Shown here: piece after piece, positions 1 through 11,512 of the stretch
Position numbering within the stretch: the stretch's first letter is position 1
Layout of the letters: each line of letters begins with the position of its first letter
From: Asterias rubens
Taxonomy: Eukaryota
Direction of reading: 5' to 3'
Length of the DNA stretch: 64,000 nt
Assembly: GCF_902459465.1 (NCBI RefSeq)
Contig: NC_047079.1
Location: 10,788,001-10,852,000, forward strand
The notes under the pieces: generated by a model
What the model was told of the DNA's origin: nothing
Database searches by the model: none
Seen by the model: only the letters and a program-made list of their open reading frames with translations
Made by a program: the position numbers and the translations under genes

Positions 1-1701
1 AATTCTTCGCATTTATGACCAGCATCTTCAGAAGCTGAGTATGGACACACTCTAAAAAAAAACTGCTCAACCTTGGCTAAGATTCTTGCCCTTTCGCTTT
101 ATAAAGGGAAATTGGCCGTTCACTTGCGGTAAAATTGTTGCAGAACATCAAAGTATAAAGCAAAAAACATCATAGATAAACCAAGTGAGAAGACTGGTCT
201 TTGACAATTACCAATAGTATACAGTGTCTTTAAGTGACAGGTGCAGCATCTTAACAGCACAGTTGGGTAAGAAGTTTACCCATGTGACGTCAAAGTTCCC
301 TTTATACTCCAAACACAAGTAAACTTTTATCAACCTTCTTTTTGGTGTAAACTGGATTATCTCATCGGTATCATGTGACAACACCATGGTGTACTTTTGA
401 TCACCCCGGTTTTTTCATTTAATAGTAAAACAAAAAATACAACCTACCAAACTCTGGTTATCGAGGGGCTTCATTTGAAGGAAGTGGTGGTTCAGTCAAG
501 AAAACCAAGGGCATCTGATGCGGATGCAGCTGGACAATACATTGCCACGCTATAACACGTCAGTCAATGGTTATGTGTGGATAACTGAAATAATGCACTT
601 ATTATGGGTCTGAGGAAGTACTTGACTGATTTGCGTTAAACAAAAGGAGGAAACTGGCATGCCATTTAAAACATATGACTCATCCATCCCCGGTTGTCTA
701 CAAAAAAGAAGAAAAAAAAATTATTAAACAAAACAAAAATAGTCTGAAGTACGGTGTTGTGATTATTGTTTGAAGGAGAACTGTATACTGAGTGCACTCA
801 TGCAAAAACTGGGGTGTTAAAATGACACACCATTGGTGTTGTCATTACTTTACACCAAAACAAGAGTGAAAATATACACCTGGGTGTTTAAATAATACCT
901 ATTTATCCCAACACAATTACATTAGTGTGACAAGGCCTTACTTTAGTATATATTTTAAGTTTTGTTATGCTTGTACATATGAATGTATAGATAGCTATTT
1001 CTCACTTTATAGAAGAGAACAATAATTCTTCAAAGGTAAAAGCAATACCGACGGGGTGTCTTTCCTTAAAGCATTACGTACACCGGTTTATTGTTCACAG
1101 CTAACACGTGCATCCAAACGGTCTATGAGTTTGCAAATTACACAATGACGGCCGTGTTTAAATAATTTTAATCAAGTGGTTACATTGAAGAGTATAAGTC
1201 TTTCCCACGAATAGCAATTAATCACCCTCTAACACTACAGCCAAATGGGCAAGGCCACGGCACACCCATGGTATTACGCAACCCGCAGGCCAAGCACTGG
1301 TTTCCACCGGTGCATTTTCACACAGAAGCCATGAATCTGCTTAATTTGTTTTCGTTGCAAAAAAAAGGATAACAAAATCAACCCGTAACCTTCCCTCAAA
1401 TAACTGTTCCAGCAGACTTGTTATAAAGTGTATGACGTGGGCGGAAAGCGTTGTTAAAACAGTTTGTTTTGTTTTGGGCCGGAAAAGGGTAGAGTTCATT
1501 TTTTTTGTTCAACCAGTTGCACATCCTTTGTAGGATTAACTTTTAATAAGGAAAAGCAAAGATCATTAGATTCATTTTGTCTGTGTCGCAGTTTCAGTAG
1601 TCGAATGGTCATGGTAACAAGGATATCTTGTAAACTCTAGCGTGGAAATCTTTTCAGATTGGCATTTAGAAAATTTACTGTCAAGAAATCAATTGTTAAG
1701 T

Positions 1702-3831
1702 ATGGCGACGTTGTGCCGATTTGTGTTTTTCCTGGTTGGAGTTTTGTACACCTCAGACGCGGAGGATTTCTTCGTGGAAAACCCTATGTCCATAGAGGTG
1801 ACACTCGGTGGAGACGTACATTTCTGGTGCCAAACTGCAGACTCTTTTGATTGTGTTAACATGAACTGGGTGTTTACACCGTCGAAGACTGAAGGTGATC
1901 CATTCGGCACCATCGGAACATGCAGGACCCCAAATTACTGGGATAGCGCTGTGAATCAACGCCTGACCCAGTCGTTCGAACATGGAAGATTTGGGTTGCA
2001 CATTACAAACGTTAGTTACGGAGACAGTGGACGCTACAGCTGCTGGGTGACGAAGGCTGTTGGAGGCGACGCAATTAGTGAGTACTCGGCGGTAGCGTTT
2101 CTGACGGTCCTCTCGCCCGTGCCAACTCCACTTTGTAGGTATACCCCGGAGGTTGTGTCTATAGGCAACGAGGTGCAGTTAATTTGTGGGGTACCGCGTG
2201 ATGCTTTTATGGAAACCGTCAAACTAACGTGGGTGCATGAGACCCCTGGCCCAGTACGAGGCGTGATAGTCGAACGTGGACGGACCTTCAGTATACCTCT
2301 CACACTCTCCGAAAGTGACAACTACAAGGTGTTTACTTGTGTTGCTGGTACAGACTTTACCAACGGACCAAACTGCACGCTTTCCCCACTGCAGATTCCC
2401 ATGACGGTTGAGATAACCCCCATCCTCGGTGAAGCTCAAACCAAGTTTGTCTGTAATGCGGATGCCGTACCCCCTGTTACAAATTACCACTGGAGTGTTC
2501 AGGAGATGGACAGTTCTTCCAATGAGTGGACAAATATCCAGATAGATAGCAGTCATATAGAAAACGAGGGTGCAACTCTTGTATTGACCACTGGAAGGGA
2601 CATTGGACTTAGGTTGTCGACCACCTGCACAGCTTCAAATAGCATTGGGTTAACCAAGTCTAGCGCCCCAGTTAGTACACTTCAGTGCAGCAGTGGTGTG
2701 ATAGTTACAGAGTTGACCCGTTGCAAAGACCTACCTGAGACTACCTCAGCTATGGTAACTACTGCGAAATCAACACGCTCTGTAAGAACAGGTCGTCCTC
2801 AAGGAACTGACGATGGTATTGGTATTTATGTCTGGATCATAGTAGCTGCAGTGGCATTATTGGTGATAGTCGCTATTATCTGCTGTATCTTCTTGGTTAG
2901 GTACAGACGAACAAGTAAGAGCAAGAAAGCAACAGACAATGATCTCATTGATACGGGGGTAGTGTATAATACCGACATGGGATCGGTTGATCTTCGCAGT
3001 CACACCGGTACATCAGAGTCCAACGCGCTCATGATGGAAGCTGAAGTTGTTCTGGCAGCATCCAATTCATCTTTACAACAACTCGATAACCGTCTCGAGC
3101 AGACAACCGGGAACAACTCTCCTCGGATCGTTGCACCCTCGTCGAGTGACGGGCTTGGGTACGGAGAAACCTACGCATCAATCGATAATTTTCACCAACC
3201 ACAGAGACCCAATCAATCAGGACTTCGTCACTCAGCAGGGGATTTAAGTTCAGGTCCTCACAAGTCGAGCCACGATGGGTACGATACAATTGGACCAGAT
3301 ATCTTTCAGCAGTCTGTAAGCTTTGATGGAAGTACACGAAGAAACCCTTCAGAGGTAGACTTAGTTGACAGTACATATGCGTCAGTCGGTAACGACCGAC
3401 ATGATGAGGTTCGAATCCCACCAGAGCTTGCCACTCAACCTTGTGCATATGAGTCTATTGATCTCAACATCTCTCAAGTTCGCACTTCCGTTCGAGACTC
3501 TTCGTCGCTGAAGAAAGTATGTGTCGTTTCACCAACTTGTCACCTGAAGGATGGTGTTGATAACCAGGTTGTATATGCGATGCCAGACAAACAGCGAAAG
3601 TCCAAAATGGACAATGGTGACAACAAAACCGACCAGGAACCTCCGGCTGGCATTGTCTACGCCAAGCCAGATAAAAAGCACAAGAAGCCTGTTGAAAAAT
3701 ATAGGAAGAAGTCCACTAATAGTGACAACACTTCAAACCCTTCTATCAAATCAAGACCACAAATGTTCCCGAAGGTCTTTACGCGATGCCGGACAAGTCA
3801 CAAAACAGATCATCAGTTTCCTCATCAGTGA
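1702..3831 (+). CDS. Intronless type-I Ig-superfamily receptor, paralog A (signal peptide, V-set plus two C2/I-like Ig domains, TM, long Tyr-motif tail); this frame ends early at a frameshift
   Basis: ATG at 1702 in good context (AAGTATGG), then signal peptide MATLCRFVFFLVGVLYTSDA. V-domain hallmarks HFWC...MNW...FGLHITNVSYGDSGRYSC. Two further C...W...C Ig folds (LICG..LTWV..FTCV; FVCN..YHWS..TTCTASN). TM GIYVWIIVAAVALLVIVAIICCIFLV at 2821-2898. The ORF-track GTG start at 1642 is upstream of the real signal peptide. Confidence 0.88.
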   Translation: MATLCRFVFFLVGVLYTSDAEDFFVENPMSIEVTLGGDVHFWCQTADSFDCVNMNWVFTPSKTEGDPFGTIGTCRTPNYWDSAVNQRLTQSFEHGRFGLHITNVSYGDSGRYSCWVTKAVGGDAISEYSAVAFLTVLSPVPTPLCRYTPEVVSIGNEVQLICGVPRDAFMETVKLTWVHETPGPVRGVIVERGRTFSIPLTLSESDNYKVFTCVAGTDFTNGPNCTLSPLQIPMTVEITPILGEAQTKFVCNADAVPPVTNYHWSVQEMDSSSNEWTNIQIDSSHIENEGATLVLTTGRDIGLRLSTTCTASNSIGLTKSSAPVSTLQCSSGVIVTELTRCKDLPETTSAMVTTAKSTRSVRTGRPQGTDDGIGIYVWIIVAAVALLVIVAIICCIFLVRYRRTSKSKKATDNDLIDTGVVYNTDMGSVDLRSHTGTSESNALMMEAEVVLAASNSSLQQLDNRLEQTTGNNSPRIVAPSSSDGLGYGETYASIDNFHQPQRPNQSGLRHSAGDLSSGPHKSSHDGYDTIGPDIFQQSVSFDGSTRRNPSEVDLVDSTYASVGNDRHDEVRIPPELATQPCAYESIDLNISQVRTSVRDSSSLKKVCVVSPTCHLKDGVDNQVVYAMPDKQRKSKMDNGDNKTDQEPPAGIVYAKPDKKHKKPVEKYRKKSTNSDNTSNPSIKSRPQMFPKVFTRCRTSHKTDHQFPHQ

Positions 3832-4172
3832 ACCCTCAAGATGCAAGAGATGATACCACCAACTTGAGGAGTACAATCTCAGAAAAGGACTTGCCATCTA
3901 AGATCCAAAACCAAGCTTTATATCGGAGTAATTCCATAACTCCAAAGAAACCACACCGCACTGCTAGTTCCAAAGTTGCTGGCTCGAAGATTTTGAGAGA
4001 TTCTATAAAAAGACAAAGCGATTCACGATCTATTTCAAGGAGTTCCTCAACTGAGGACAACCTGGAAGCAAGCACGCCCTCTGTCGTTCCTGCTGAATCA
4101 GACATCGTTCGGAAAGTAGACACTTCTTCGAGTATACCGATCTACGCAGTGCTTGAAAAGGGTTCACAATAG
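3726..4172 (+). CDS. Out-of-frame (-1) continuation of the paralog A cytoplasmic tail
   Basis: This frame is open from 3726. It reads ...VPEGLYAMPDK..., repeating the YAMPDK/YAKPDK motifs of the upstream frame, and ends IPIYAVLEKGSQ*, matching paralog B's end PPVYAVLEADNNEKSE*. Joining gives 823 aa from ATG 1702. Confidence 0.8.
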   Translation, partial: QHFKPFYQIKTTNVPEGLYAMPDKSQNRSSVSSSVNPQDARDDTTNLRSTISEKDLPSKIQNQALYRSNSITPKKPHRTASSKVAGSKILRDSIKRQSDSRSISRSSSTEDNLEASTPSVVPAESDIVRKVDTSSSIPIYAVLEKGSQ

Positions 4173-4333
4173 AAGAAAACCCGACTGGATTTGTCTGAAA
4201 ATATCAGTATGAATCCTTCGTGTGTCTCATCAGCACATACCTTTTCGCAAATGGCCATTGCGCAAACGCTATCTGTTGTATGAGGCGCATGCTGGTTTAG
4301 CTAGCGATCAGACTTGATCGCTAGCTAAACCAG

Positions 4334-4556
4334 GGTCCAATCTCATAGAGCTGCTTAAGCACTAAATTGTGCTTAAGCAAAACAATCCTTGCTTAGTAAA
4401 ATCAGATTACCGACCAAGACTCCACTCAACTGTTATGCTAAGTAAACAACAGCTAAATACCAGTCACAAGCAGTGTATATGGCATGACATTTTGGCCAGT
4501 AACATGTGTAAAATAAGGGAGCTATTTTCGTGCTTGCAGCTCTATGAAATTGGCCC
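4334..4556. mobile_element. PIF/Harbinger-like MITE
   Basis: TIRs GGTCCAATCTCATAGAGCTGC / GCAGCTCTATGAAATTGGCCC, with CAG directly repeated on both sides. A second degenerate copy follows at ~4608-4797. Confidence 0.7.
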
Positions 4557-6984
4557 CAGAATGCACCTACCTCATTCCAAGCCTAACCTGCGCTTATTTG
4601 CGGTAAGGGCAAAATTACATAAAGCTGTTAAGCAGAAAATACTGCTTGACAAATGTCTTTGCTTAGCAAACATTGAGTAAGGCACAAGTTGCCACTATGT
4701 AAACTTTACGGAGTTTTGGCTGGTAACATGTTTCTGTTAAGCGGTACTTTCATGTGTTTTGCAAACTGTTGTGCTTCATTCTTTATAAAATTTGGCCCAG
4801 GACTAAAGAGCAATGTCTCTTCCCTTGCTCTAAGGATTCAAATGTACGCAATATTTGCATTTCGAATAATATTCGGTCGACGGATGCTTGTGTATCGTCG
4901 AATACTTCGATCATTGGATTCACCTCATGAAAAATGGAACTGTCTAAATTTCACATCGTGATTATATTCTGCTATATTGTACTTATATCATTTGCATCCG
5001 ATATTTGGATAATATTCAATGTTAACCAACTAATATGAGCCGGGGGTAATTTCACCAACCTATAGGACTAGCCCTGTAGGAGATATTAAAAACTTAATGT
5101 TAAGCCCTAAGTTCCCAACTCGAGATAAGACTGGTAACTCTTTGTGTAACCCCTGGTTGTACACTGCCAGAGCAAACAGACATAATATTTCACAGTTGCA
5201 TGTTGGCTCTTTTATTTGAAAAAAATAATGTATATAGTTTTCACAAGAGATTGGACCCGATTCCATAGAGCTAGGCAACAAGTAGCTAAGCTCAACAACA
5301 AACATTATTTTATACCATCCAAACTACGATGTCGTACGTTCAATTTGTGGCTGGTGGCCTAGTCATTTCTGCTTATAGGCAATTGTTAATTCCATTCAAA
5401 TTAATTTTAAAAAACTTTAATAATCCTCAATCAAACTTTAAGTTTAAGCACATTTTGGGGGCTTAATGAGCTCTACGAAAACCCTGGCTGCATAATTGTA
5501 CGATTTAAATCAAAACCAGTGCCACTGTTTTTTGTTTTGTTATAATTATGATATTTTATCGAAACAGAAATAGCGCTGTTTTTTTTTGTTTTTTTTCGTG
5601 CCGTAATAAATTCAAGTTGTATAGCTTAAATATAAAGTGCTTTATGAAGAAGTATTGTTTTGTATATAGGCCTAAAACTCGACTAGTCTAAAAGTATTTC
5701 TTTTAAATTGGTTCCGCTGAAATTCGCGAATGAAGTATACTGAGACGAACTGTTGTCTTAATTGTTGGTAAAGTGTCTATATTTATTCTAATAGAACGAT
5801 CAGTTGAATTGGACTGTGACATTTTGTGACAGGTAGAGATAAAGAATCTCATCCGGAAGAATTATACCATTTCCTTATGATTAACCTATTTCCGAATCGG
5901 GAATTACGCGTGGCCTTAAAGGGCAGAACGTTTCTCTTTTAAAGGAGCAGAGTTGTATACTCGTACACTTTGTTGATGATGACTCGCTTGGTGTGACGCC
6001 ATGAAATATATTGTATAAGTTAACTGTACCCGTTGAGAAAGAAATATGCACACCAGCCAGATTCGTGGGTACACTTTGTCTGAAAGACACAATTGTGAAC
6101 AAAATGTAGTGTGGGCCATGCACTGCAAAAACAAGGTTTTATTTTATACAAACATTTCAGCAACCAGGAGCAGTCGCAAAAGGCAAAGCAGTTTTCATGA
6201 CGTGAAAGTGAATGTTTACAAACCGTTTAGTCTTTGTATCACATTATAACATTGATTGAGAGTATAATTATTTATAAATGTTATGGTAAATACTTTTCAA
6301 TTTATATGTATATAGATTACAACGTACACTTGTTTATGGTCCATTTTGAACCACCCGGAGGTGTGCCGGGTGGATATTCAAACGGTACATTAGTTCATTC
6401 GTTACTTTTTTGTAGACGGTGTATATCATAGGTCTACACAATTTAACATTTCTTAATTATAAAAGCTCATTACCGAAATAGTTTTGCACTTCTATTTCCC
6501 ATCAATCGTTTGCCCGATCGAGAGGCTTAAATTTGTGTGGTCAAAGGTTGCTTATAAACTCTGACTAAATATTGTTCGATAAAATCACTGACTAGAGTGC
6601 ACCTTTAAAAGTTATTTGTCAATTATTATAATTGAGTGTATTAATATCCTCATAACTTTTCAAAAGCCATGTTCTCCTGTACTTGGTATTACATTCACTT
6701 ATTAACAGGTGTCAAAAATAAATGGATAGTTCCTTTTACTGACGAAACTGAACCCGTGTGTGAGATTACAAACATCACTTTCGGCACAGTGGGATACCTT
6801 ACTTTCATCAAAATTAATTCTACTTTCTTTAAGAACGGGGCCCAGTTTCATACAGCTGCTGAAGCAGGAAATATCTTCACAATATTTTCTACTTTAGCAA
6901 AATGGAGCAGGATACCAGTCATAAATTTGTACATGTGACATAATATTTGGGCTGGTAACCTGTACTATTTTTAGACTGTGCTGG

Positions 6985-7445
6985 TGTCCGCCATGCAACA
7001 CTCTCCGGTCCGGACACTTTTGCATATGCAATAATGTCCGAGGCTATGCAAAAACCGTCCGGTGGACATTTACATGACTGTACATGTGCGCACGTAAGTG
7101 AGCATGCATGCACTGAACCTACGTATATGCAGCATGAATATTCACGTATGGTTGCAGCAAATACCCAACGGCCGGACATTTCCCATGTCATTCATGACAT
7201 GCACTTAGCTTGTAAAAAAAAGGTGAACGTGTTCCGTCGACCAAGGGCGTTTAATTTACTGCAAGGACGGTTTTGCACGGGGCGGACACAACTGCATATG
7301 CAAATGTGTCCGGGCGGACACAATTGCATTATGCAGCAGCGTCCGGGCGGACACGATTGCATATGCAAAACCGTCCGGCGGACATAATGGCATATGCAAA
7401 AATGTCCTCCGGATAGTATTGCATAGCGGACATAATTGCATGCGA
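6985..7445. repeat. Modular array of GTCCG(G)GCGGAC and TGCATATGCA short palindromes
   Basis: Alternating motifs recur many times in both orientations. Confidence 0.6.
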
Positions 7446-9314
7446 CACCGGTACACAGTGGTGTCCGACCCCCCCCCCTCGCCCCACGTCGATCCTTTCT
7501 TTATCTGCAAGGATAACGGTAACGGCAAGTACTTGCTTTTCAGAACCAGTATTTCATTGGATACAATGATGTCACTGGATAAACATGCAGTGAATCACTA
7601 GCTTTCCATGCCTGTGTTTTAATTGGTCTGGAGGTGATGTGAGTGCAGCTGACAAACATCACCTCGGACCAATCAAACTTTCGGTCGTCTACTTGCAATT
7701 TAAGCTGTCTGCACTTAATGTTGGTATAGGATTCGATGGGTGTAGGTGGAAGGTGATTATGGACGGGGATTGACCTATAGGCCAGAGGTCACTCTCTGGC
7801 GTTATCGCGAGCCTCGATGTGTGACGTCAGATGAAGTAAAGGCTATTGGCTAATATAACCCCTCGTGTTTAAAAGAGCGGGGGGGGGCAAGCCGCGCAAC
7901 CACGTGTTCAGGGATTAAAAATGTGACTTTTTGGCACGAATTTGCTCAAGTGACGAGCATGCATCTGTTATTTGGACTGTTAAGTTCCGTGAGTAGTGAC
8001 TAGGAAGTATGATAGGTTTGCTTGTGTAAGCATGGGATTTCAAGTTATGTACCATAATATTCGTGCTGATGGAATAATAGGCATTGCCAATGTTCGCCGC
8101 AAAGGATGTCACATGTTGTTTTGTATACTCCATGTAGTTTAGTGCTGATCATTATCAACAAAAGGAAAATAATGCGAAATAGAAGCAACAATGATACCGA
8201 ATTGTTCCTGTCTTTTGTTTATTCGTCTTCTCAACAATGCAACATTAAGAGTTTGATTTGGTGAGCTTACAATTACAAGGCACAGCAAAAATATCAGTGA
8301 TAAAAAAATTGCGTAATTCTGCACTCCAAAAGAATAGAATTCGGAGGGCTAGGATTCCCACGCAAATGAAACAAAAGCCTATTCAATTCTAGCCCAATTA
8401 TATGGTAGGACTTTTCCTCTGCTGTGCTGTAGTATAAAATACGAAAGTGTAAGGCCACCAGGGCTGATTCAAATCTTGACGTTTCGCTTTGTGAATGTTA
8501 ACACAAGTAAAGAAACAAAAATGCAACCATATATATTTTTGTTTTGCTTGATGATGGATTGAACAATGCCAACTTTCGCTTTTCGGTTCATGTCATTCAA
8601 TCACCACCACAGTCACGTGAGCACTCTCCTGCTTGCAGTTTTTATTATACAAGTCCCTTGCTGAGTTTTTGTTGTTTTTCTGTGTTTTTCTTTCCTTTTT
8701 TTCATACTCTAGAGGACGTTGTACGCATTATCATTTGTGACACAATATGGCCACATGACAGTGTGTGTGACGTATACTTGATTCTAACTTACATACTCTC
8801 TTAATGTACATGTAAAAGAGTGCAAACCACTCGTTTTGTCCGCCACACCACTCACTTGAAAAGAGCTATGGTGGACAACTCTTTAGAATGAAAGACGGTT
8901 GCTTTCAACTCGATTTAGAGTGAAACTCGTTCAAAAGAGTGGAACTGACACCACTCGGACAAGAGAGTGAAACTTTCACTGTTTTACATCAATAGAGTAC
9001 TAAACTCTAGCAGTAGTTTCTACTCAGGAAACATACTACGTATAACTTGGATAGGTTCACACGTGTTGTAGATCTGATACAAAGAAAAACATTCTTAGTA
9101 TGTATCACTACACAATGTGCCTCCGTATATAAAGCAAGACACAGGGAACACGGCCAATTTATTCGATGTGATTGAAGTGGTGAACATTCTGGTGTTTTTT
9201 TAACAGTTATGGACACTCACAATTTCTACAAATTGTTACTATTGGTTCATAATATTTGCAATTAGACAACATCTCAAGTCGGTCATTCATCAACAGGACA
9301 CGCATTGGATAGTC

Positions 9315-11255
9315 ATGGCTCTTTATATTCGGTTGATATGCTTTTTTTTAATAGTTGGATGTATGGATGTATTGGGACAGCGCAGCAGCCCATTTGAAGA
9401 CACAGCCGGTTTGTTGACGATTCCAACCCCAGTTTGCAGGGTTAAAACCAAGGTCTTCATAAACACCACGGCACAATTAATATGCCAAATTAAGTCTTTT
9501 CAAGGCAATGAAAGTGTAAAATTAAAGTGGTCTTTTTTCACGAGGAGTGTTCGTGTGGAGGAAAAATCATCATCATTTGCTGCATTCCACCTTTTCACTG
9601 AAATGGACAACTACCGGGAATTCACTTGTGTTGCTGGTCCTGATAACCACGGGCCAAACTGCTCGTTAACTCCGTTGCAGATTCCAACAAACGTAACACT
9701 TCGTATTGTGGACAACGGAACAGATGACGGCACCATTGCGTTTAAATGTTACGCAGAAGCCGTACCTCGCCATACGTCTTACGTGTGGGGCGTGTTAGAA
9801 GCTGAAAGCTCCTCGGATAATAATTGGGTGGAACTTCAAGGTGACGACAAACGAATATCGGACAATGGCACTGTCCTGGTCATCTCACTCGGGAACATTG
9901 CTTCAAGGCCTGTATTAGTTGCTTGCACAGCGTCAAATGAACTGGGATTGACTGGGTCAGATACGCGTAAGTATCAATTTGTCCCGAATCAAAGCGTTCC
10001 TACCACACTCGCCATGCCGACAATGGTATCGCCCATAGATATCGACATGAGTGACACAGAAAAACTTGTCGTGATCGTTTTATCGGTTTTGATTATTACC
10101 ACAGTCACGACTGTTTCGTGCATCTGGATTTTGAGGTTCATGAGATTGCAGAGGAGGAAGACATCCGGAGGCAAATTTGATGGGGTAGAATTGAGCGATA
10201 GACAAGGCAGGTCTTCGGGACAACGACGTAGGCTCTGCGTCAATGATATCCACGTCTTGACTGGAAGTTCAGAAGACAATGCCATCATAATGATGGATGT
10301 TGGAAGTGGGGAATCCCCAGTTGACGTATCATCACCGGAAGTTCCGAGAAGCTCCCTCCCTCTGCATCCAAGCCGTCAGGGGGAAGAAGAGAGACGCGGC
10401 AACCCCGGGGAAGGAGGTAAAAAGAACGATGAGCTGGGTGATGAGTGTGGTGGCGCCCTTGTAGCTGGAAGTACTTTGCTGGACGCACGTGGTGCTTCAA
10501 ACAAACCCTGTCATGGATCATGCCAAAGGAATCGGAAACAAATCACCACGCACCAAGAGGATGATGATCTTCAGGATTCGAGTCAACCTCTTCAATCAGA
10601 TCCTCTCTTTGGAGAACCTTTTGGAGAAGATCAACAGTGGGGTATTTGGGATGCAGTTCAAGACGCAGGAGAGGGCGGCTCTAAGAAGGACATTGAATCC
10701 GAACCTCTGCACTACGGTTATTGTCTGATTAACCCAGAGTCATCATCTCAGACCGTCAACAAGTCGCATCCAGCAGGTGGAATAACTCAAGTCGACTGTG
10801 GCTATGCTTCCATAAGCATTGATGATATCTTAGACCAGGATCTAGAGACAGAGAAACACACCTCTTCAGGTAGCCCTTCTCGAGCAAGTGGGTACTCCGA
10901 CAAGAAAGTGTGTGTTGTCACGCCTCTTTGCCAACCACCACGATACTTAATGAATCGTGGGATATCAACCTCTATGACACCTTCGAGCCAGGATGTTTTG
11001 TACGCTGTCCCACATAAGCCACAATGCAAACCCCAAAAGCCTGCATTAATTGGAGATTCATCGAAAGCAAAGAAGGGACATCGTGGGACTACCTCGGGTT
11101 CTCAAACTTCAAAGAAATCAGAGCTCATTTATGCTGTCCCTGATAAACCAGGGAAACCAACTGCGTCGAGTTCTAATCGCCAGCAGCAATCTATTTCATG
11201 TGAACCACCGGTCTATGCGGTTCTTGAAGCCGACAACAACGAGAAGTCCGAATGA
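9315..11255 (+). CDS. Intronless type-I Ig-superfamily receptor, paralog B (signal peptide, two C2/I-like Ig domains, TM, Tyr-motif tail), 646 aa
   Basis: Signal peptide MALYIRLICFFLIVGCMDVLG. Aligns with paralog A: PTPVCR/PTPLCR, FTCVAGPDNHGPNCSLTPLQIP/FTCVAGTDFTNGPNCTLSPLQIP, CYAEAVP/CNADAVP, CTASNELGLT/CTASNSIGLT. TM KLVVIVLSVLIITTVTTVSCIWIL. Shared tail motifs KKVCVV[ST]P, YAxP and YAVLE. Confidence 0.88.
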   Translation: MALYIRLICFFLIVGCMDVLGQRSSPFEDTAGLLTIPTPVCRVKTKVFINTTAQLICQIKSFQGNESVKLKWSFFTRSVRVEEKSSSFAAFHLFTEMDNYREFTCVAGPDNHGPNCSLTPLQIPTNVTLRIVDNGTDDGTIAFKCYAEAVPRHTSYVWGVLEAESSSDNNWVELQGDDKRISDNGTVLVISLGNIASRPVLVACTASNELGLTGSDTRKYQFVPNQSVPTTLAMPTMVSPIDIDMSDTEKLVVIVLSVLIITTVTTVSCIWILRFMRLQRRKTSGGKFDGVELSDRQGRSSGQRRRLCVNDIHVLTGSSEDNAIIMMDVGSGESPVDVSSPEVPRSSLPLHPSRQGEEERRGNPGEGGKKNDELGDECGGALVAGSTLLDARGASNKPCHGSCQRNRKQITTHQEDDDLQDSSQPLQSDPLFGEPFGEDQQWGIWDAVQDAGEGGSKKDIESEPLHYGYCLINPESSSQTVNKSHPAGGITQVDCGYASISIDDILDQDLETEKHTSSGSPSRASGYSDKKVCVVTPLCQPPRYLMNRGISTSMTPSSQDVLYAVPHKPQCKPQKPALIGDSSKAKKGHRGTTSGSQTSKKSELIYAVPDKPGKPTASSSNRQQQSISCEPPVYAVLEADNNEKSE

Positions 11256-11269
11256 CAATCCAAATCCTG

Positions 11270-11512
11270 GGCCCAATTTCATAAAGTCTGTAAGCACAAA
11301 ATTTTGCTTTGCGTGAAATTTCTTCCTGGAATAAAAAACAAGATTACCAACCGAATTTTAATTTGTTGCATAAATTGTTTGTTACTGGCATTCAGCTGTT
11401 GTTTGCTGAACTTGAAAATCACGTAAAATTTTGTTGGAAATCCTGTTTTTATTAAGGAAGAAATTTCATGCTAAGCAACTTTGTGTGCTTACAGGCTTTA
11501 TGAAATTGGGCC
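11270..11512. mobile_element. PIF/Harbinger-like MITE
   Basis: 29-bp TIRs GGCCCAATTTCATAAAGTCTGTAAGCACA (28/29 match), starting 14 nt after the paralog B stop codon. Confidence 0.75.

Follow-up and report, generated by a model that had tools for sequence, protein, structure and literature searches.

The window analysed here, that is, the whole 64-kb stretch at C19:10788001-10852000 of the 417.6 Mb Asterias rubens genome assembly, carries two genes for immunoglobulin (Ig) superfamily receptors, hereafter gene 1 and gene 2. They lie in tandem on the same strand, and each combines an open reading frame (ORF), a signal peptide, Ig domains, a transmembrane (TM) segment and a tail without introns, so that the pair described in a first-pass annotation of this DNA is borne out in its general layout. 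We found no further fragments of the family in the window besides these two genes. The window DNA is 93-94.5% identical to a chromosome of Asterias amurensis. Gene 1 is organized as follows:

1702..4172, + strand: gene 1, intron-free type I Ig receptor, single coding exon
1702..3762, + strand: part A of gene 1 (frame 1), from ORF, Pfam, AlphaFold model and family alignment
1702..3831, + strand: ORF of gene 1 as read in the assembly, 709 amino acids (aa) counted from the signal-peptide Met
~1702-1761, + strand: hydrophobic N-terminal signal peptide
~1762-2112, + strand: domain 1, variable (V)-set (Pfam V-set/Ig_3 at residues 27-123)
~2113-2406, + strand: domain 2 (model and family alignment)
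2233..2322, + strand: hypervariable patch of domain 2, codons 178-207, strands C' to E
~2407-2691, + strand: domain 3, followed by a stalk (model and family alignment)
2833-2898, + strand: TM helix, residues 378-399, followed by the proximal tail
3166-3183, + strand: ETYASI, tail tyrosine motif
3370-3387, + strand: STYASV, residues 557-562, tail tyrosine motif of the immunoreceptor tyrosine-based inhibitory motif (ITIM) consensus
3442-3459, + strand: AYESI, tail tyrosine motif
3511-3528, + strand: KKVCVV block of the tail
3568-3585, + strand: VVYAMPDK, tail tyrosine motif
3652-3669, + strand: IVYAKPDK, tail tyrosine motif
3762..4172, + strand: part B of gene 1 (frame 3), distal tail, stop at 4170-4172
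3774-3791, + strand: third YAMPDK, in part B
4137-4154, + strand: C-terminal IPIYAVLE, in part B

Gene 2 follows downstream:

9315..11255, + strand: gene 2, one ORF of 646 aa
~9315-9377, + strand: signal
~9411-9704, + strand: homolog of domain 2
~9705-9989, + strand: homolog of domain 3
10065-10133, + strand: TM segment
10797-10814, + strand: YASI, tail
10902-10919, + strand: KKVCVV, tail
10995-11012, + strand: VLYAVPHK, tail
11124-11141, + strand: LIYAVPDK, tail
11208-11225, + strand: PVYAVLE, tail

Modelling with AlphaFold yielded three beta-sandwich domains and a TM helix for gene 1 (built on the family alignment; mean predicted local distance difference test, pLDDT, 79), and two beta-sandwiches and a TM helix for gene 2 (pLDDT 73), in which a Pfam scan had returned no match. 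The two genes are related over their common parts: gene 2 aligns to domains 2-3 and the TM segment of gene 1 with 33% identity (E 3e-35), and both tails hold the blocks TG(T/S)SE(S/D)NA(L/I), YASI, KKVCVV(S/T)P, repeats of YA(M/V/K)P(D/H)K and a C-terminal P(I/V)YAVLE. This resemblance is far above chance. The first-pass annotation held that only the cysteine/tryptophan scaffold and a few short tail motifs had been conserved, and this understates the resemblance, since the stretch DNY(K/R)xFTCVAG...GPNC(T/S)L(S/T)PLQIP is also nearly identical between both genes. A quick maximum-likelihood tree, built from 42 ectodomains, makes genes 1 and 2 sisters (support of 97 in the Shimodaira-Hasegawa-like approximate likelihood ratio test, SH-aLRT), and the stem leading to gene 2 is very long (1.48 substitutions per site).

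The main architectural difference between the sisters is the V domain, which gene 2 does not have. In the family alignment, its signal peptide is joined directly to the last strand of the lost domain. The V domain was therefore removed by a deletion that kept the reading frame within the one exon, which bears out the domain loss proposed in the first-pass annotation. No relic of it was found in the 64-kb window. Gene 2 has intact orthologs or alleles elsewhere, in A. amurensis as well as on a marine metagenome scaffold: the 646-codon frame is open in three independent sequences, with in-frame indels only and ~6.6% nucleotide divergence, and gene 2 keeps all its tail tyrosine motifs and Cys/Trp cores across the sequences compared. 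An inverted repeat (window 11270-11512; arms of 67 nt that are 85% complementary and separated by 109 nt) begins 15 nt past the gene 2 stop.

Gene 1 is interrupted in this assembly. The A-run at 3760-3763 lacks one base, leading to a frameshift that splits the gene. Overlapping the gene 1 end as assembled, a frame-3 ORF (3726..4172) reads ...NVPEGLYAMPDK...IPIYAVLEKGSQ*; it supplies the third YAMPDK and a terminal motif matching that of gene 2, and the two frames join at 3760-3763. Contigs from four other public sequencing runs (two of organism A, one of organism D and one of organism E, ~4% diverged; X2, X8 and X13 are among them) all carry an extra A behind 3760 at full depth. Furthermore, the A. 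amurensis ortholog of gene 1 is one open frame of 824 aa with the same terminal motif, and a more distant ortholog (contig JACSEG010004274.1 of GCA_014845345.1; 72% protein identity) is in frame across the 3760-3763 site. As the four runs and the A. amurensis ortholog read straight to 4172, gene 1 ends there and not at 3831, and it encodes a protein of ~823 aa with the terminal P(I/V)YAVLE motif known from gene 2. The tail truncation proposed for this locus hence comes from a single base missing in the reference, a deficit that 4/4 runs and A. amurensis do not share. We also considered a short intron in place of the frameshift, and rejected it: there is no room for one in 3726-3770, and reads and orthologs carry a plain extra A. 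The missing base could be an assembly error or a private allele. From this assembly, gene 1 would be mis-annotated as truncated or as a pseudogene.

Two further positions differ between the reference and the runs: position 1367 is A in 4/4 runs and G in the reference, and at position 1948, in the V domain, X2, X8 and X13 read A where the reference has G, the organism E run being the exception. Taken with the A that is lacking at 3760, these positions suggest reference-private alleles or errors. In the distant ortholog, the Tyr codon of the third YAMPDK is an in-frame TAG (L038:2690-2695), and downstream of it the frame is open and conserved for more than 90 codons, up to the contig end. This is a second, independent break, at most 20 nt from the position of the reference frameshift; an error, an allele and a recent truncation are all possible. 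In A. amurensis, the intact 824-aa ortholog of gene 1 (L046:1388-3943) is missing from the called genes of the locus, and the gene 2 ortholog is called there (XP_071805484.1). Very high-copy interspersed repeats lie on either side of gene 1 (window 174-234 and ~4330-4630), with a summed contig depth of 10^4-10^6 in 4/4 runs, many joints and contig breaks.

Comparison between species revealed purifying selection over the whole length, the distal tail of gene 1 included. The ratio of nonsynonymous to synonymous substitution rates (dN/dS) of gene 1 against A. amurensis is 0.33 overall, 0.34 for the ectodomain and 0.27 for the tail, and constraint within the gene is strongest in the portion of the tail behind the break (0.09 against A. 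amurensis, 0.20 against the distant ortholog). The two gene 1 orthologs keep all tail tyrosine motifs but one. For gene 2 the ratio against A. amurensis is 0.58, and its second allele, from the marine metagenome scaffold, shows 20.5 nonsynonymous and 5.5 synonymous changes, mostly in the tail (97.1% protein identity, 1.3% nucleotide difference).

To place the pair, we searched the genome in six frames with either protein. These searches yielded 17-25 paralogs, each one an uninterrupted frame of 440-930 codons, and many of them stand in tandem clusters, for instance a group of six at C19:7.343-7.362 Mb and several groups on C12. Every intact copy that we examined encodes a signal peptide, an ectodomain of ~330-400 residues, one TM segment and a tail of 56-520 residues. 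A profile built from 17 members gave 84 genome matches at E <= 1e-8, 48 of which cover at least 250 of the 399 profile positions in one open frame of at least 420 codons and are spread over at least 10 chromosomes; 48 is a lower bound for the family loci of this genome. When the profile was run against 1.84 billion representative proteins, giant multi-Ig proteins topped the list through summed domain scores and were set aside, and single-stretch, full-length matches were kept. The relatives recovered in this way (390-740 aa) belong, by their database names, to A. amurensis, Patiria miniata, Acanthaster planci, Strongylocentrotus purpuratus and the crinoid Antedon mediterranea, and bear no label beyond 'uncharacterized protein' or 'cell adhesion molecule 2-like', the latter automatically by NCBI. 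The best matches outside echinoderms were amphioxus Kirrel-like proteins (E 1e-28 to the profile; 25-27% identity over ~40% of the query). A word-index search with gene 1 alone had returned one ortholog only, the other relatives coming from the profile searches. The proposal of a family that diversifies by duplication is therefore well founded, with at least 48 single-open-frame loci, tandem clusters and an echinoderm-restricted distribution.

Within this family the gene pair falls in a 12-member clade (SH-aLRT 98) that also contains the C19:7.345-7.361 Mb cluster and one protein each from A. planci and S. purpuratus. The closest paralogs form a tight cluster at C19:7343000-7362000 (L002, L003, L005, L008, L009 and L012), in which some copies are truncated and three carry tails with pairs resembling ITAMs (immunoreceptor tyrosine-based activation motifs), YMDL/YMEL, nine residues and YMGL/YMRL, that replace the ITIM-like ones. 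The first-pass annotation recognised no named ortholog for the pair, and here the picture changes, as the family includes the published intronless kirrelL, Kirrel2L and Hypp1164 (PMC8903837). Neither window gene is the single-copy, slowly evolving ortholog of a nectin, a CADM or a Kirrel that the first-pass annotation had set against its own proposal. In the literature on echinoderm Ig receptors with ITIMs, we found no account of this subfamily.

The tails follow a common order from crinoid to sea urchins: at least one (I/V/L)YAxP(D/N/E)K, then N(V/A)EGLxYA(D/E/Q)LD, then a C-terminal xxYAx(I/L). The second element fits the ITIM consensus, and the third fits either the ITIM or the immunoreceptor tyrosine-based switch motif (ITSM). 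We counted motifs in 22 Asterias tails and compared them with 500 composition-preserving shuffles:

ITIM consensus: observed 17, shuffle mean 5.6, shuffle maximum 13
YAxP: observed 10, shuffle mean 0.7, shuffle maximum 5
YA: observed 41, shuffle mean 9.1, shuffle maximum 19
ITAM-like pairs: observed 4, shuffle mean 0.2, shuffle maximum 3 (2 of the 4 come from near-identical copies of the C19 cluster, YMDL-x9-YMGL)

The tyrosine-motif tails reported at first pass are thus present and enriched throughout the family, whose conserved phosphotyrosine grammar resembles that of vertebrate ITIM/ITSM receptors. At the ITIM position, gene 1 has NVPEGLYAMPDK and gene 2 has SELIYAVPDK, both with Pro at Y+3, so that YA(M/V)PDK now stands at the ancestral ITIM position in the window genes. 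A count with the ITIM-receptor pattern [ILVS]xYxx[ILV] gave one site in gene 1 and zero in gene 2, and many paralogs hold a pair. ITIM pairs are usually 20-30 residues apart. Phosphorylated YxxP sites favour the SH2 domains of Crk, Nck, Abl and RasGAP, and ITIMs favour those of SHP and SHIP.

These observations lead us to a reading in which the pair would probably encode cell-contact receptors that signal via phosphotyrosine docking sites. Genes 1 and 2 are tandem duplicates coding for type I membrane receptors of an echinoderm-specific, intron-free KirrelL-type Ig superfamily, with a V - C2-like - Ig ectodomain in gene 1, and a sister copy, gene 2, that lost its V domain in frame and then evolved fast. 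The ectodomain would bind a ligand on another cell, as in KirrelL, nectins, CADMs and SIRP, other family members being the likeliest ligands, and the variable C'-E face of domain 2 would add specificity. The tyrosines of the tail would in turn be substrates of Src-type kinases. For most members, N(V/A)EGLxYA(D/E)LD and the C-terminal xxYAx(I/L) would fit an ITIM/ITSM pair that recruits SHP-type phosphatases; for the window genes, YA(M/V)PDK with its Pro at Y+3 would point to adaptors of the Crk/Nck/Abl/RasGAP type, beside YxS(I/V) and the terminal YAVL. The process served might be cell-cell contact, skeletogenic or of another kind, or the regulation of immune cells.

Several points weigh against this reading. 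The only member with a known function, KirrelL, is just 23% identical to the gene 1 ectodomain. A strict ITIM is found once in gene 1 (STYASV) and nowhere in gene 2, and SHP-type inhibition is therefore not simply transferable from the paralogs, while the putative SH2 partners of the window-gene tails come from general knowledge of SH2 specificity. Constraint on gene 2 is also weak, its dN/dS rising from 0.58 between species to ~1.1 between alleles. The predicted complex of two gene 1 V domains (residues 21-137) scored 0.00, which counts neither for nor against binding.

The patch in domain 2 of gene 1 deserves separate consideration. Against A. amurensis, its dN is 0.26 and its dS 0.57, to be compared with 0.025 and 0.084 in the rest of the gene, an increase of ~10x, and the nucleotide mismatch reaches 20% in 2165-2314. 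In the patch, both Asterias sequences are as far apart as either is from the distant ortholog, and it is the A. amurensis version that keeps the ancestral states common to that ortholog; X2, X8 and X13 have the reference version. The homologous patch of gene 2 (9528-9608) is its most diverged part (dN 0.16, dS 0.17, ~4x the rest of the gene). Gene conversion from an existing paralog was examined as a source and rejected, there being no donor in the genome, where only gene 2 matches (75% over 89 nt). The patch may go back to conversion from a lost or unsampled source, to old allelic lineages that became sorted, or to a spell of rapid change on a face that binds a ligand.

Variation between individuals differs for the two genes. 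Gene 1 differs by 2-4 letters in ~4 kb in X2 and X8 and by few in X13, and this near-invariance argues against a role as an allorecognition marker. Sampled words of gene 2 were recovered at 0.28-0.76 in the same runs that gave 0.94-0.97 for gene 1; two runs were under 0.05, and X5 and X7 are missing from the runs that contain gene 2. Polymorphism or presence/absence variation may underlie this patchy recovery, as may low expression should the runs be RNA. In the run contigs intergenic DNA has the same depth as coding DNA, so the contigs look genomic and say nothing on transcription. No run containing either gene is recorded as RNA, except one metatranscriptome with a small share of gene 1.

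An immune or allorecognition role for the pair is possible at best, and the little variation seen in gene 1 does not favour it; several alternatives have to be weighed against cell-contact signalling. The first would make the pair, with its family, an echinoderm equivalent of the vertebrate paired inhibitory/activating Ig receptors (SIRP, Siglec, LILR/KIR), placed on coelomocytes and tuning their activation through ITIM- and ITAM-like tails. The family is indeed large and clustered, with very diverse ectodomains; tail ITIMs are enriched about threefold, and the closest paralogs at C19:7.35 Mb have the ITAM-like YMDL-x9-YMGL. Moreover, motifs such as LLYADLD and TVYASI conform to the consensus patterns of vertebrate ITIMs and ITSMs, dN/dS values of 0.33-0.58 exceed those typical of housekeeping genes, and SIRP alpha/beta are among the best fold matches. 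We nevertheless hold this alternative to be unlikely. ITIM pairs also occur in the non-immune adhesion receptors PZR, PECAM and SIRP alpha, which counts against it, and the window genes have largely lost the canonical ITIM. Against it stands, too, that the relatives that have been characterised, KirrelL, Kirrel2L, Hypp1164 and IgTM, are specific to skeletogenic cells and not immune (PMC8903837).

A different possibility sees in gene 2 a duplicate undergoing decay, or a decoy without V domain and without a signalling role of its own, leaving gene 1 as the sole working receptor. The lost V domain, the long stem, the missing Pfam match and the raised dN/dS of gene 2 all go in this direction, but its frame is intact in the three independent sequences with nothing other than in-frame indels, its tail tyrosine motifs and Cys/Trp cores are all kept, and its predicted fold retains two Ig domains and a TM helix. 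Decay, or a decoy role, is an improbable account of gene 2.

Much the same low expectation attaches to a bolder scheme, in which the family of at least 48 loci, with its ITIM-type, YxxP-type and ITAM-like tails, would be an independent echinoderm self/non-self or immune-regulatory system born from retroposition and tandem duplication, the hypervariable C'-E patch of domain 2 in the gene pair would be a specificity determinant under balancing selection or conversion, and gene 2 would vary by presence/absence or deep allelic divergence.

Finally, a locus for allorecognition or self-marking of the Alr1/Alr2 type, with polymorphic ectodomains and allele-specific homophilic binding, is highly improbable: the general design of clustered Ig receptors with ITAM/ITIM tails is Alr-like (PMC9546547), the 30-codon patch of domain 2, diverged ~10x at both site classes and donorless, could be explained by old allelic lineages, gene 2 is recovered less fully than gene 1 in the same runs (two of them <0.05) and its second allele differs at 3% of residues, but gene 1 is nearly invariant with the same patch in X2, X8 and X13, Alr alleles number tens to hundreds and are very different (PMC9546547), the allele differences of gene 2 are mostly in the tail and not in the ectodomain, overall dN/dS is below 1, the Alr genes have one exon per domain and a Fn3-like spacer and so no homology, and sea stars are solitary.

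One exon unrelated to these questions lies further along the window, at 29381-29824 (perhaps also 24806-25285). It encodes the C-terminal domain of an FAD-linked oxidase (Pfam PF02913, E 1.6e-37) and looks like part of a D-2-hydroxyglutarate/D-lactate dehydrogenase-like gene, unrelated to the receptor pair.

Returning to cell-contact signalling through phosphotyrosine docking, the closest known system is KirrelL. This Ig-domain membrane protein is needed for skeletogenic-cell fusion, and its gene is intronless in every echinoderm examined (PMC8903837); retrotransposition has been suggested as its possible origin (Khor & Ettensohn, eLife 2022, PMC8903837). Since the kirrelL relatives are published as intronless, the intron-free structure seen in the window was already known and attributed to retroposition. 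The sequences of KirrelL, Kirrel2L, Hypp1164 and IgTM, all specific to skeletogenic cells, are listed in the source data of that study (PMC8903837). By side-by-side comparison of the sequences, our profile match P0111 (E 1.6e-78) matches the published A. planci protein Aplc_KirrelL, and in BLASTP the gene 1 ectodomain is collinear with it (23% identity over 334 aa, E 5e-16). KirrelL is reportedly also treated by Ettensohn & Dey 2017. In the tree, the KirrelL clade consists of P0111 and L020, at C11:16.396 Mb, whose tail carries the KirrelL motif YISQLYSTLD; L020 is by these marks the Asterias kirrelL-type gene. The window genes fall in the different clade described above (SH-aLRT 98), and as the tree places them outside the KirrelL clade they are not kirrelL orthologs; they are instead distant paralogs, an uncharacterised subfamily of a partly characterised echinoderm family of intron-free Ig genes.

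Window genes and KirrelL share an echinoderm-restricted distribution, an intron-free coding sequence (one exon in both window genes, once the missing A of gene 1 is allowed for) and the succession of signal, V, C2-type and Ig domains, TM segment and tyrosine-bearing tail, which is complete in gene 1 and lacks V in gene 2. They differ in domain 2, which in the window genes is without the CD80-like C2-set signature and has an extra conserved Cys pair (C145/C225), and in the tail, where KirrelL has YISQLYSTLD and the window genes have YAxPDK repeats. Across the family, the tails have the same grammar as those of Kirrel2L and Hypp1164 (PMC8903837, Figure 6 source data 3), with (I/V/L)YAxPxK, then N(V/A)EGLxYA(D/E/Q)LD, then a C-terminal xxYAx(L/I). 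The published Kirrel2L and Hypp1164 tails contain PIYAKPxK, LVYADLDL and a C-terminal YAx(L/I) in the same arrangement, and the Asterias locus L014 has the Hypp1164 tail blocks. Unlike these, the window genes have Pro at Y+3 of the central ITIM-like site and belong to another clade. The four groups described in the papers that we found, KirrelL, Kirrel2L, Hypp1164 and IgTM, are thus the visible part of a much larger family, which spans crinoids to sea urchins and has no fewer than 48 loci in a single sea-star genome. The locus yields testable candidates for cell-contact, possibly immune-regulatory, receptors, which are poorly known in the phylum.

Vertebrate receptors resemble the pair at the level of the fold. 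Foldseek searches of the PDB and of Swiss-Prot models returned basigin/neuroplastin, SIRP alpha/beta/gamma, CADM1-4, nectin-1/3 and IgLONs (E 1e-12 to 1e-15). Nectins and CADMs, SIRP alpha and basigin have in common with gene 1 a three-Ig (V-C-C) type I ectodomain, but in the vertebrate genes each domain has its own exon, and their identity to gene 1 is 13-20%, without orthology; at this identity the Foldseek matches are generic for Ig proteins, and confirm the architecture but not an orthology. The SIRP alpha tail has motifs of the YADL/YASI/YASV type. In the case of nectins and CADMs, whose ectodomain is V-C2-C2, the ectodomain fold is similar (15-20% identity) and the tail motifs are absent from the window genes, whose C-termini, ...EKGSQ in gene 1 and ...NEKSE in gene 2, hold no afadin/PDZ or FERM-binding motif. 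Bilaterian Kirrel/Neph/Kirre proteins have five Ig domains and a PDZ-binding C-terminus, whereas the window genes have three and two Ig domains, respectively, and end in sequences that do not fit the definition of a C-terminal PDZ-ligand motif.

The last comparison is with the Hydractinia Alr complex (Huene et al. 2022, PMC9546547), which likewise contains clustered, divergent Ig receptors with one to three Ig-like domains, some of them with ITAM/ITIM tails. The Alr genes have one exon per domain and a Fn3-like spacer and are gathered in a single complex, with Alr1/2 alleles that number from tens to hundreds (PMC9546547). In contrast, the family of the window genes is intron-free and dispersed over at least 10 chromosomes, and gene 1 is nearly invariant.

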